Shown here: positions 8,631 to 52,982 of the stretch, piece by piece
Numbering within the stretch: the first letter of the stretch is position 1
Layout: each line of letters begins with the position of its first letter
Translations under genes and position numbers: made by a program
The notes under the pieces: generated by a model
The model's input: only the letters and a program-made list of their open reading frames with translations
What the model was told of the DNA's origin: nothing
The model's database searches: none
Assembly: GCF_006345805.1 (NCBI RefSeq)
Contig: NW_021835936.1
Span: 1-52,982, forward strand
DNA: 52,982 nt
Direction: 5' to 3'
Source: Octopus sinensis
Lineage: Eukaryota

Positions 8631-9844
8631 GTATATATATATATATATATATATATATATATTATATATATATATATATATATATATATTATATATATAT
8701 ATATATATATAATATATATATATATACATATATATATGATACAAAAAAGAAAATGGAGAAACAAATTTAGTTTGTTAATCAACTTTCATATATTAGAATG
8801 TTGGATCATATATTCATTTAACAAAATGAGAAACTTAATAGCATACATATATATATCTTATAATTCAGTACATATAAGAATACAAATTATAAAAATCATA
8901 ATATATTATTGTCTATATATATTATATATATATATATATATATATATATATATAATATTGTTTCTGTATATATCTGTGAACATGTGTATATATATTTGCA
9001 TGACTATAGTGTATGACTATAAATTGTGTTGTGGTTGTGTATGTGTGTTCGTGTTTGTGTGTGAGTGTGTGTTGTGTGTGTGTGTGTGAGTGTGCGTGTG
9101 TGGTGTGTGTGGTGTGTGTGTGGTGTGTGTGTGTGTGAGTCTGTATCTGTAAATCTGCCTCTCTGTCTGCTATTACAAAAATTTATTGAGTGCAACGAAA
9201 TTCAGTTTACAATTCAGATTCGTCATATTTTTATTTATGTACAGATATATGTGTGTGTATATAAGCATTGTATCTTTGTGTTTGCATCTATGTTACCAAC
9301 CTTAAGTGTTGCTCCTGCTACATCTGTATATTGAAGGTTTTATCAATGTTAATAAAATAGAAACAATTGTAGGCTTTATACTGAGCAAACTAATAAACGC
9401 CACTGTCTCTATATTTATCGTTTCTTGTTAGAAAGTCTGTGTTTCTTTCCGAATTCTGCCATAGGATATTTCTATTTACTTATCATACAGGAGGAATTCA
9501 CCTGGATGTGTATTCTACTTCTTATTACTGGTGCCTAATTGTCGAATATTGTTAGATCTGAATCTCTGGATTCCCCTCGTTGTCCTACATGGCTTTTCCC
9601 TGTATTTGGGAAAATTTGTCTTTAATTGTTAATTGTTACGTTGTTCACATTAATTTATATAAATCACATCACAAACGTAAACGACAAACACTCATTTTCA
9701 TACCCGCGCGCACACACACACCACACACAGAGAAAAAGTGAGCGTCTGTTTGAGAGGATGAAAGAGAGAGCGAAGATAGAAGGGAAGACACATATATATA
9801 GAAACATACAATTAGATTAATAATATCAAAAAGATCAAACTTAC

Positions 9845-9916
9845 ACCCTCTCTAAATTGGTGAGACCCTCGAACGATCCATGTTCAATAATCGCGATTTT
9901 ATTATTGGCTAGATTT
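9845..9916 (-). CDS. LRR exon (72 nt) NLANNKIAIIEHGSFEGLTNLER(V)
   Basis: aattacAG|AAATCTAGCC...GAGAGGGT|GTaagtt; phase 2/2; open frame. Confidence 0.92.
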
Positions 9917-9956
9917 CTGTAATTTGGGAGAGAATTGGTGAGAAATGGTATAAAAA

Positions 9957-9966
9957 TGATTAGTCA
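9957..9966 (-). promoter_or_regulatory. Candidate branch point TGACTAAT (representative of copies upstream of all eight 72-nt exons)
   Basis: ATTAGTCA on + is invariant in all 8 units, about 38-44 nt upstream of the exon; matches the CURAY consensus. Confidence 0.65.
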
Positions 9967-48377: not shown

Positions 48378-48449
48378 AAACGCCATATTCTCGGAAGATT
48401 TGCATACAATCCATTTTCAATTTTCACGATTGAATTATTGGATAGGAAT
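48378..48449 (-). CDS. LRR exon (72 nt) FLSNNSIVKIENGLYANLPRIWR(L)
   Basis: ctttcAG|ATTCCTATCC...TGGCGTTT|GTaagtt; phase 2/2; open frame. Confidence 0.88.
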
Positions 48450-49207
48450 CTGAAAGATAATTCATAAACAAAGAACATAGAAGTGATTAGTCATATATTT
48501 CAAATATTATGTCCAATGAATTAGCTGCAGAAATAGAAGAGATATAAGTAGGAATGAGACAATTTGGTGAAAACAATTATGAAAATGATAAGTGAAGATT
48601 ATAAAGATAATAATGAAGATGTATGGCATTGTGTTGAGTGATGATGAAAGCGATAATTATTATGATGAGGGCATTGACGGTGACGGATTTGGTAGTGATG
48701 AAGTTGTTTCGGTCTGCTGGCATTGCACTTGTGGTTCCATATTATGACTGATAAGGATGATGATGATGGTGGATGATGGTGACGACCACCACGAGGAGGC
48801 AGACGATGATTATGATGACAATATTTACTGATGGTGCTCTTAATATTTGGAATGATGATGTGGAGGATGACGCTGATATACAAAGTTGAAACAATAACAA
48901 AAGAGAAGGATAAGAATAGGAATAAAATTAACGACCAGCAGTAATTGATAAATGAGATTAAAAGGGTAAAGAAGACTAAACTAGAACTGGCGATATGTAT
49001 CTATCTATCTATCTATCTATCTATCTGTCTACTTATCTAACTATCTATCTATCTAACTATCTATGTAGCCATCCATCTATCTCTCTATCCATCCATCCAT
49101 CTATCTATCCATCCATATATCTATCTATCTAGCTATTTATCTATCTATCTATCTATCTATCTATCTATCTATCTATCTATCTATCTATCTATCTATCTAT
49201 CTATCTA

Positions 49208-52200
49208 CGGACGTGCTGTCACTTCGGCTCCGAAGGTAATCGTTTATTTTGACTATTTATAGCCCATATTTTGTGTATATTTTTGAAAATAAGGTGTGTA
49301 AGGCACCCAACTTTCGTTTGAGTGCGTTTCCAAGGGAGGAATTCGGCCCTAGGGGCTATTTCAACCCCATTTCATTTCTGTAATTTTTTTGTCGACATTA
49401 GAAAATGCCGAGAAATTTTATTGTAGAACGCTGGTCGCGTTTCTTTATGGACCAGCATTTTCCTAGTTTGGAAACGCTAGGAGAAGAAAAAAAGAACTCA
49501 TGCACGCAAAGTGCAAACATGAATATCGTTGGAATGAACGCTGCAACCACGTGCGGTAACAGCCCTGTCACCACCGCCACCACCACTAACAACAACAACA
49601 ACGAAACTGCTACTGCTACCACCACCACCTCCACCACCACCACCACTACCAACACAACCAACATAAATGATAAAAATGAAACTCACGCGAATACTATTAA
49701 GAAAAACAACAACAACAACAACAACAATAAAAATGAACTATCTAATAGTGAAGATGTTAATACAAAAAAATTAACAACACCAGTAAATTTCGCTGACACT
49801 CTGCGTCAGAAGAAAGAGATTGTAACATTTACAAATGAAGAGCTCATAGAAACGAGAGCTCTCTTTACAACCCGTGGGCAAGATTTAGTGCTACATACAC
49901 CTCAACACATAAAGCAAGAAATAGAAAATAAGACAATTATATATAAAATTATAAGAAAAAACAAAAAACTAAATGAGCAGATTACAGAAACAGATGTAGA
50001 AAAATGCTTAAAAAACATAATGAAAGAAAAAGAATATATAAACTGGGGTCTCCAGTTTAACACAGTAGTGGTCCGCTTCCCTAACTAGGAAGTGGCAAAA
50101 GCTCACTCTACTGAGTCTCTGGGAATTGATGAAATCATCATGGTCCCATACTATAAAAACCAGAGAGTGAGTCGAATCACTATTAAAAATGTACCTCCCG
50201 ATCTTCCTAACAAATGGATAACAGGGGCAATCTGTTACCATTTAAAAAATATCAACATTTTGGAAACCGCCGTGTACTTTGGCGACATTTGGGGTGGGAA
50301 GACAATAGTGGTGACCATACAGATTGAGGGGGCCTCTATCGAGAGCCTACCGGATAAGATCCACTTGGAAAATGGGCAATGCCTATATGTTGTAGCAGAA
50401 GGCAAAAAACCTAGATGCTACAACTGTGGCAGCCCCGAACATTTAATTGCCAAGTGCGCTCTGGTACAGAAAAAACAAGAAAGAACAAATCAGAAAACAA
50501 ATAAAAAAACCCTTGTTGCCAACACCAACATCAGCACCAACACACTCAATTATGGAACAATGCCAAGAAAAACAACAAACCAGCAAACAAACCCCAACAA
50601 CATCACCAAGAAAAGAAACAGTACCAACACAATCACCGTTCACGTCACAACCAATTCAACATGCTGAACCAACAAAAAATAGACCAACACCAACACCGAG
50701 AACGGCAATTAAAAAGACAGAAAACAGTGACGAGAAGACAAATTCTACCCCTAACACCACAACAACACAAACACCGCACAAAACATCAACAATTTCTACA
50801 AGCATACATAGTAATGCAAATGCTTTGCCTTTACCTCCTACTGATACGTCGGACGACGAAAGTTCGACGGAATGGCAAATAGCCACAAGGAGTAAAAGGA
50901 AAGGATCCAAAAAATCCACCAAACAAGGAAGTAAAGCAGGGAGATATCTAACTCCGGACAACATCCCCTAGACAATCAAAAAAGCAATGAACCCGTAAAA
51001 CCACACACACAACTAACTGCAATAGACACAGACAGACAATAAAGAATTAATGGACTACATCACATCCAACACGGACATCTGTGAAGATGACTTTAAGACA
51101 AACAATCATCCGCACACCACACCACCGAAACACATCAGAATTTTACACATAACACAAGCACAACACCACATACTGAAAACAATATTTCCGAATGCGGTAG
51201 GCGGGTTTCAACGATACCTGTCCAGAAAACTATACAAACACCTCATCAAAAACAATACAAAAGAAGAAGAAAAAAATGAAACTTTTAAATGAGTAAGTGA
51301 CCTCGCCTCTTGCCTCTTGTCTCTCATGTAGTGAGTAGTAAAACACAATTTTCGTAAATGTCAAGTATGCTTAAATTAGTTTGTGTGAATGCGCGTGGTT
51401 TGGCGTCGGCTTGGAAGCAAGGTTACCTTCTAAACGACATCAAGTCACTGAACGTGGATATAGTAGCTATCAGTGAAACCAGACTCAGTAAGCCGCGGGC
51501 CCTCGAGTCCATGTTTGGCAATCAATTTGACATTTATTTTTCTCCCTGTCTGCCGAACATGGGTGGTAGAGATACCGCGGTGCTTTTTCGAAAGAGTCTA
51601 AATGTAAAAGTAAGAGCAATATTCCTAGACCCGGAGGGTAGGCTGGTTGTCTTGGACGTGGATGGCAGAAATGGGTGTGCATTCCGTCTGATGGCAGTTT
51701 ATGCACCCTCATTAACGGGTCGGGCGGATTTCTTCAGACGTCTAGAGGTTTTCCTGGGTACGTCTAGACCTTTACTGTTAGTAGGGGATTGGAACGCTAC
51801 CTTGGACACGCATCTAGATTATGTGGGAAGGGATAGGAATAGAAGGGGGTGTAAGAGCCTCTAAGACCTGCTCAGACGTTTCCATTTGTCTGACAGGTTC
51901 CGACTCGACCATCCGAACGTGCCAACGTGGACTTGGACAAACCGCATCGGATCGTCGAGATTTTATCTAGATAGAATTCTATGCAGGACAGCGGATAGGG
52001 ATAGTGTAGGATGTCCACAATTTAAAATAGTCAGCTACACAGATCACAAATTTGTTACGTGTACGCTCGACTTAGATAAAACACATAGGCAGGGTCCCGG
52101 TTACTGGAAACTGAACACGTCGCTGTTAGCGCGACAGGTTTACAGGAACCGGATTAGCGAGTTAATTAAGAGGGAACTGACGGGAGCCGTCGTTAACAAC

Positions 52201-52982
52201 CGCTGGTGGTACGCCCTGAAAATGGCAATAAAATCGGAATCAATTAGGTTTAGCAAGGAATTAGTGATAGAACGAAATAGAGTAGAGGGAGACTTGGTTA
52301 AGAAACTAGAAGAGGCACTTACCACTGGCAGCGCAACCAACGTGCTGGCTGCGTCAGAGCTAAAATGCGTGCCTTAAGGAACGAAGGGATCGAAGCTGCG
52401 CGTGAGGCCCGGGTAGCGGAGGCGCAGCGTGGCAACAGAGCCACCATTCGGTCTCTAATAGATCAACAGGGATGCAGTTTACTCTAACCCGAAAGGATGT
52501 GTGAGGCCTTTCAACAGGACTTTGCTCGACTGTTTGGTGCGAGTGGTGGGTCGGAACGCGGGATGGATTTCAGTGCCTACCTGACCGACCTGCCACGGCT
52601 CTCGGCAAGAGAAGCGGAGTGTTGTGAAAGTCCCATCACAGCCGCTGACGTGTGGGATGCGATGGCGGGCTGCGCGAGGGATAAGTCGCCTGGATTGGAT
52701 GGTTTACCCTACGAGCTGTATTGTCAAATGCCAGACTTGTTTGGCGACCTCTTCGCATCAAGCTACTGCAACTGGCAACAAAACGGGAGAATCCCCGGTT
52801 TCGTGAGCCGAGGTGCAGTGACGTTGCTGAAGAAAGACCCAAACAAGGGGAATTTTATCGATAATTTCAGGCCCATCACTCTGCTCAACGCAGATTTGGA
52901 AATTTTGGCCAAAGTAATAGCCGAGAGGTTGGCGCTTGTCATTGGTAAACTGGTCGACAGGGCGCAAACATGCGCCGTGCCG
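49208..52982 (+). mobile_element. Second, near-identical Tx1-like LINE copy (runs off the window)
   Basis: Same 5-prime junction CTATCTA|CGGACGTGCTG and shared stops and deletion with 26394-32140. Confidence 0.95.

Follow-up and report, generated by a model that had tools for sequence, protein, structure and literature searches.

How does a gene acquire its leucine-rich repeats (LRRs), and is their number still changing? The question is raised by a 52,982-nt stretch of the Octopus sinensis genome (RefSeq assembly GCF_006345805.1, contig NW_021835936.1, positions 1 to 52,982; hereafter the window), AT-rich eukaryotic DNA rich in microsatellites and non-LTR retrotransposons, which carries an array of short LRR exons of a gene on its minus strand. 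We consider it quite probable that the window covers the middle part of a single octopus gene, whose LRR array grew by tandem duplication of exon units, undergoes turnover, and presents a diversifying binding face.

A scan of the window for 72-nt segments lying between AG and GT and encoding the LRR motif found exactly eight exons, all on the minus strand and in phase 1, each with a pyrimidine tract, a CAG acceptor, a GTAAGT donor, and an open reading frame. Four are of the IVKIENG type (B) and four of the KIAIIEHG type (A). In the direction of the gene they are B1 (FLSNNSIVKIENGLYANLPRIWR, 48378-48449), B2 (NLSNNSIVKIENGSFANLPKLEY, 41343-41414), B3 (LLYNNAIVKIENGSFAKLPNLRE, 34335-34406), B4 (DLSSNAIVKIENGSFANLPNLGE, 25524-25595), A1 (ILVNNKIAIIEHGSFVGLTKLYK, 15679-15750), A2 (NLANNKIAIIQHGLFEGLTNLYK, 13251-13322), A3 (KLANNKIAIIEHGLFEDLTNLYK, 11003-11074), and A4 (NLANNKIAIIEHGSFEGLTNLER, 9845-9916). 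The LxxLxLxxNxIxxIxxGxF repeat is present in the translations with a 24-residue period, and the eight exons joined together read as eight perfect 24-residue LRRs. Pfam LRR_8 matches both the O. sinensis gene model P0002 (E = 3.5e-21) and the O. vulgaris gene model P0001 (E = 8.6e-39). A ninth, unduplicated LRR exon (NLSYNRLQKFDGAFSYLSSINE, 7112-7180, minus strand, 69 nt, GTATGT donor) has its ortholog in the final LRR exon of O. bimaculoides (L004 9451-9522); it lies outside the range covered by an earlier note on this DNA and is left out by P0002. All nine exons are symmetric (phase 1-1) with one repeat per exon, so that any number of units keeps the reading frame. Each 24-residue LRR would thus correspond to one symmetric phase-1 exon.

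Self-BLAST of the window revealed collinear repeated blocks far above chance (E = 0), with 83-90% identity over 1.0-2.1 kb among the A blocks and 86-95% over 1.7-6.5 kb among the B blocks. The earlier note had placed each 72-nt exon in a repeated unit of about 1.2-2.4 kb (A) or about 7 kb (B), and the measured exon-to-exon spacings are 1158, 2248, and 2428 nt from A4 to A1, and 7035, 7008, and 8811 nt from B1 to B4, with microsatellites at corresponding places. The A array (8901-17066, minus strand) consists of exon-bearing blocks at 8901-10322, 10310-11468, about 12322-13734, and about 14734-16166, and of a second block of 1 kb at 11453-12432, 13770-14740, and 16129-17066, which is not present in A4; (TA)n tracts mark the unit junctions (12309-12395, 13721-13807, 14617-14859, and 16577-16621). 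The B array (21973-52982, minus strand) is built of a segment that we call X (21973-23857, 37570-40407, and 44244-46519), an exon core (24571-26253, 34243-35218, 40406-42111, and 46521-49124), a (TATC)n tract, an optional long interspersed nuclear element (LINE), and an inverted-repeat segment followed by (TA)n. The (TATC)n tract lies 5' of every B exon (26140-26393, 34975-35246, 41989-42099 with 42559-42714, and 48994-49207), and unit B3 is truncated 92 nt downstream of its exon, without segment X. Unit B2 also has a local tandem duplication (41748-42314 versus 42310-42953, 78% identical) that includes its second (TATC)n tract. Because the homology extends across the exon, both intron flanks, the microsatellites, and an old LINE fragment, growth by tandem duplication of exon-plus-intron units is shown directly. 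In the mechanism that we propose, the array would have grown by repeated tandem duplication of genomic blocks, each carrying one exon and its intron.

That the units are instead falsely duplicated haplotypes or repeats of the assembly is scarcely credible. It is true that the locus is present in two contigs, L001 and L002 (44-45 kb), of the older O. sinensis assembly (GCA_006345805.1), which are 99.8% identical over their full length and are therefore haplotigs or redundant contigs, and that LINE copies in different units are 99.5% alike. The units themselves, however, differ by 5-17%, with distinct indels and distinct exon peptides, and the same unit types are found in a separate chromosome assembly of O. 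vulgaris (OX597842.1, L003). The window matches this chromosome at 94-99% identity, and at 96-99% where it is single-copy. Positions 1-30962 of the window match L001 and L002 at 99.2% identity, with 58 mismatches and 152 gap openings across 31 kb; the older contigs stop at position 30962, within a LINE.

The transposable elements have a history of their own. A 5.8-kb LINE with endonuclease, reverse transcriptase, and zf-RVT domains occupies 26394-32176 in unit B4, on the plus strand and thus antisense to the gene, and begins directly after the (TATC)n tract; the same element, again on the plus strand and directly after (TATC)n, is found in unit B1 at 49208-52982, where the window stops before the element does. 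B2, B3, and the A units do not contain it. The two copies are 99-99.6% identical, whereas the flanks of these units are 87-96% identical, and this argues that the LINE is not a passenger of old duplications and spread among units that already existed, either by conversion or by repeated insertion beside (TATC)n. The same LINE is present in four O. vulgaris units, and copies in three O. vulgaris units are about 99% identical to those of the window. No clear microsatellite target was seen at the 3' end of the LINE. A different case is an old LINE reverse-transcriptase fragment in the B exon core (24287-25206; 74% identical to 2268-3189), which recurs at 40407-41019 and 47113-48054 and must therefore have been inserted before the B units multiplied. 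The proposal of the earlier note that the units carry their own transposable elements thus holds for the old fragment common to three B cores, but not in its simple form for the 5.8-kb LINE.

These elements bring up another origin of the units, namely spread by retrotransposon-mediated transduction and not by tandem duplication at the DNA level. Several units, in both species, have a LINE next to their exon core, and a comparable idea has been raised for Tetrahymena (PMC6564038). We nevertheless regard transduction as very unlikely, as the units are head-to-tail and collinear with their introns retained, and the LINE is antisense to the gene, absent from half of the B units in the window and from every A unit, and younger than the unit flanks. 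Neither target-site duplications nor poly-A tails bounding the units were seen at the junctions examined.

The B units also contain an inverted repeat with arms of about 230 nt (33115-33883, with further copies at 36580-37255 and 43274-43887). Just past the downstream end of the A array, at 8284-8627 and with a (TA)n tract on each side, is one copy that resembles a single such arm (74% identity to the arms in the B units). The earlier note had taken 8290-8630 for a miniature inverted-repeat transposable element (MITE) that matches 33130-33782 together with its left flank. A match does exist, but only to one arm (8270-8560 against 33115-33409, 74%, and in reverse orientation against 33575-33883) and not over the whole span, and the left flank is (TA)n. 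We rejected the MITE identity, for 8284-8627 lacks terminal inverted repeats if the (TA)n on either side is set aside, and every related copy that was seen occupies the corresponding position in one of the B units here. Elsewhere in the window there are more LINE remnants with reverse transcriptase and zf-RVT (1150-5443 on the minus strand, 12-533 and 17600-19248 on the plus strand) and long (ATT)n tracts (809-1052, 1874-2214, and 5612-5845), while a tRNA scan found no tRNA-derived short interspersed nuclear elements.

Do the A and B arrays have one origin? A and B units can be aligned over the exon and some 330 nt of the intron upstream of it (BLAST E 1e-16 to 1e-26), including the GAT-rich tract that the earlier note had described in both, and the A-to-B distance is 0.45 as compared with 0.49-0.96 to any O. 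bimaculoides unit. In a tree, the A, B, and O. bimaculoides exons form separate clusters, with bootstrap values of 100% for A, 100% for B, and only 27% for A plus B. A single ancestral unit that seeded both arrays, as had been proposed, is thus consistent with the data in the shared exon and intron sequence, while the tree leaves the pairing of A with B weak. A and B are one family of units, not duplications at two scales. The family has a basic period of about 1.2 kb, seen in O. bimaculoides and between A4 and A3, which was later inflated by insertions and re-duplicated; blocks of this ancestral length would have swelled by microsatellite growth as well as by insertion before the next round of duplication.

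We next consider whether exon number differs between species. The O. vulgaris array comprises eight intact B exons, one A exon, and the last LRR exon. Its A exon is the ortholog of A1, the sole A exon with a counterpart there (97.8% identity over the exon and 350 nt on each side), and B4 also has a positional ortholog there, the exon at L003 87270. O. vulgaris retains, at 95-96% identity, the block that lies upstream of A2, after which the sequence jumps, at L003 104484/104487, to the tail of the A4 unit; at this deletion junction, with microhomology of at most 1-2 nt, 4.36 kb carrying A2, A3, and A4 is absent. Because the divergence among the A units is 6-12% and that between the two species in single-copy DNA only 1-3%, the A duplications predate the split and A2 to A4 were lost in O. 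vulgaris. An insertion of 5.4 kb specific to O. vulgaris (L003 98195-103635) lies within (TA)n just past the A1 unit and has no long open reading frame. The B units have no simple one-to-one orthologs, and positions 30000-52982 of the window have no O. vulgaris counterpart at 97-99%. Trees of the upstream and downstream flanks of the B units are discordant, which indicates that these units are mosaics produced by recombination or conversion.

At the probable O. bimaculoides ortholog locus (L004) there are five LRR exons within about 4.3 kb, namely four mutually related exons (72 or 69 nt, 0.27-1.4 kb apart) and a fifth that corresponds to the last LRR exon, while O. vulgaris has 10 or more LRR exons over about 90 kb. 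We dropped the assignment of individual O. bimaculoides exons to A or B, as these exons group together. The suggestion of the earlier note that the repeat count is still variable therefore stands between species (four A exons versus one, with the deletion junction visible), whereas within O. sinensis the window, L001, and L002 are concordant across window positions 1-30962. We infer that gain and loss of units continue, and that sequence still passes between units through unequal crossing-over or gene conversion.

Conversion also leads to a rival account, in which the arrays are old and look young and lineage-specific through gene conversion within species (concerted evolution). The grouping of the O. 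bimaculoides exons with each other and not with A or B, the discordant flank trees of the B units, introns that are more alike than exons, and the close identity of the LINE copies in different units are all as expected from it. However, the species are not alike in the number of exons or in the length of the array (five exons over about 4.3 kb in O. bimaculoides versus 10 or more over about 90 kb in O. vulgaris), so that net gain or loss has occurred whatever part conversion has played, and A1 and the B4 region keep clean orthology, at 97-98%, between the sister species. We therefore judge concerted evolution of old arrays rather unlikely.

A further rival is that most of the duplicated exons are unused intronic relics and that the number of LRRs in the protein has not truly grown. 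The gene models give some ground for this, since P0002 uses only B4, A3, and A4 of the array and P0001 uses five of the eight O. vulgaris B exons and no A exon. In addition, both L001 (17594-17665) and L002 (at the corresponding site) have an A2 of 71 nt that is frameshifted by a 1-nt deletion, AA to A, which could be either assembly noise or a real null allele, as the older contigs differ from the window mainly by indels. On the other side, none of the 17 exon copies that the window and O. vulgaris together contain is interrupted, AG and GT are in place in each, and the acceptor and donor signals are off consensus at only 1 of 276 positions, compared with 47 of 624 in the flanks (p = 4e-7). 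The motif ATTAGTCA, which the earlier note had seen in both types of unit, is found once per unit at a fixed offset in eight of eight units, out of nine plus-strand matches and one match on the other strand in the whole window. On the gene strand it reads TGACTAAT, which matches the CURAY branch-point consensus, lies 37-50 nt ahead of each acceptor, and is retained in 16 of the 17 copies in the two species. At B4 this branch-point-like motif is at 25632-25639 (minus strand), 37-44 nt upstream of the acceptor, and its equivalents start at 9959, 11117, 13365, 15793, 34443, 41451, and 48486 on the same strand. Both gene models, moreover, are probably fragments of a gene that annotation has split, as described below.

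The pattern of variation in the exons speaks against relics as well. Ten B units can be aligned. Their exons have a nucleotide diversity of 0.164, compared with 0.064 for the 400-nt flanks (Mann-Whitney p = 2e-5), and variation is seen in 29 of the 72 exon columns but in 164 of the 774 columns of the flanks (p = 6e-4). The excess falls on the x residues of LxxLxLxxN, with codons 1, 20, 22, and 23 the most variable (diversity 0.36-0.69), while the codons of the L, N, I, and F scaffold are invariant. Neutral decay would not yield an invariant scaffold together with hypervariable x codons. We consequently regard the relic account as improbable, and infer that all exons of the array are spliced in.

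The x positions of LxxLxLxxN face the solvent in LRRs. An AlphaFold model of P0001 (predicted local distance difference test score, pLDDT, 88.8) has a solenoid fold with one beta strand per 24 residues, and the strands lie on the x-L-x residues that span the exon junctions; the most variable codons would therefore line or adjoin the concave face. In this model the hypervariable residues are likely to lie on the binding face of the LRR domain. The ratio of nonsynonymous to synonymous substitution rates (dN/dS) is 1.2 for B and 0.5 for A, calculated on very short sequences. Diversifying selection is in our opinion the best reading of the excess diversity of the B exons, and a variant of it is that introns are homogenized around exons that selection keeps different. 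The array would thus conserve its splice signals, the branch-point-like motif, and the hydrophobic LRR scaffold, while the solvent-exposed residues of the concave strands, encoded across exon junctions, would diversify faster than the introns. The LRRCT-like and cysteine-rich ectodomain exons downstream (L001 33273-43855 versus L003 109344-116050) show an amino-acid divergence of 7-16% between the two sister species. Positive selection between species on these 3' ectodomain exons was considered and rejected, for dN/dS is 0.85 but the exon divergence of 3-6% is about that of the local introns that can be aligned (3-8%).

To which kind of gene does the array belong? P0002 runs from B4, A3, and A4 into an LRRCT-like exon (beginning DLRNNTDMMCGC) and a cysteine-rich region beyond the window start; the LRRCT-like exon has no Pfam match, nor does the cysteine-rich part of the ectodomain, whose cysteine pattern ends in CCxxxLCN. 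P0001 has an LRRNT-like part, with a score (E = 3e-4) that falls under the Pfam cut-off, and five B exons. Its last exon (RMPQKLKVQIVAFIVSTAVHAFL*) corresponds at 100% identity to window positions 6328-6396 (minus strand), where it lacks an AG acceptor; it could be a dubious annotation, or else an alternative tail of hydrophobic character. The O. vulgaris model that follows, of 899 aa, begins at Met17 of the LRRCT-like exon and has GPS and 7tm_2 domains. Downstream of the O. bimaculoides homolog P0080, at a distance of 1.5 kb and on the same strand, there is a GPS/7tm_2 model, and the locus as a whole is within a tandem cluster of GPS/7tm_2 gene models. Because the adjoining models carry the LRRCT start, GPS, and 7tm_2, there is probably one LRR-bearing adhesion G protein-coupled receptor (GPCR) gene that annotation has split in all three species, and from this gene order the array is probably the LRR ectodomain of an octopus-specific adhesion GPCR. 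An LGR-type receptor, our first guess from the 72-nt exons, was rejected, since the neighbouring models carry GPS and 7tm_2 and not 7tm_1. An octopus-specific expansion of adhesion GPCRs has been described, with LRRs in 5 of 22 members (Ritschard 2019; PMC6408891). According to the portions of that paper available to us, members of its group 3 resemble our locus in being co-localized, in having the GPS motif and in some cases N-terminal LRRs, and in showing signatures of positive selection; these portions describe whole-gene duplication and contain no mention of intragenic LRR exon arrays or their turnover.

Several points count against the account given here. P0001 and P0002, which are predicted models, each skip several exons of the array, and the A2 frameshift in the older contigs, though perhaps assembly noise, is a blemish on the integrity of the exons. 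The comparison between species uses a single assembly per species in a very repetitive region. The O. bimaculoides locus belongs to a tandem gene family and its orthology is probable only, and the number of four B exons is the count inside the window, whose end cuts the B array. The dN/dS values were obtained by NG86 with only about 15 synonymous sites per pair, from pairs that are non-independent, and dS in the B exons (0.165) likewise exceeds intron divergence.

In the textbook cases of the LGR/glycoprotein-hormone receptors and of ribonuclease inhibitor, also cited in PMC11378527, the exons that encode the LRRs are alike in size and phase and are believed to descend from a single prototype. 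LGR receptors resemble the octopus array in having the LRR ectodomain of a seven-transmembrane (7TM) receptor encoded by such exons. These duplications, however, are ancient and fixed, and the LGR 7TM domain is rhodopsin-type, whereas those of the octopus are recent and differ between sister species, and the neighbouring 7TM domain is class B (7tm_2).

A second parallel is found in the LRR exon arrays of brown-algal ROCO genes (Zambounis 2012; Teng 2024, PMC11378527), where one LRR is encoded per 72-bp exon of symmetric phase, exons are duplicated and shuffled, and positively selected sites are on the concave face, to which we liken the octopus array. The ROCO proteins are cytoplasmic LRR-ROC-COR GTPases of algae with phase-2 introns, while the octopus array would encode, in an animal, extracellular LRRs with putative LRRNT and LRRCT caps, in phase 1 and with introns inflated by transposable elements to 1-9 kb. 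In Tetrahymena (Xiong 2019, PMC6564038), LRR exons of the same length and phase have expanded clonally, exon number varies by ectopic recombination, and a non-LTR retrotransposon is linked to the arrays; there the exons are 90 bp and phase 2, in thousands of genes with tiny introns, unlike the single octopus locus with its 72-nt exons. The mechanism is thus the known duplication of symmetric exons, of which the octopus array is a fresh example. Distinctive of it are its youth, the difference of three exons between sister species, and its hypervariable binding face. A literature search on octopus LRR exon duplication found nothing specific.

What does this mean for the octopus? A bolder reading, which we hold to be doubtful, is that the array is a diversity-generating cassette system, in which alternative exon inclusion together with fast germ-line turnover would produce many receptor variants with different binding faces. 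It rests on the phase 1-1 exons and on concave strands that are assembled across exon junctions. If it is true, the variants could serve in chemotactile, self/non-self, or neuronal recognition. Because annotation has probably split the gene in all three octopus genomes, the LRR counts and adhesion GPCR architectures reported in cephalopod surveys are probably underestimated. The locus shows the growth of an LRR domain in progress in an animal receptor gene, with duplicates so young that their introns can still be aligned. Sister species stand three exons apart, with the deletion junction still visible, and the binding face diversifies while the scaffold and the splice signals stay constant.

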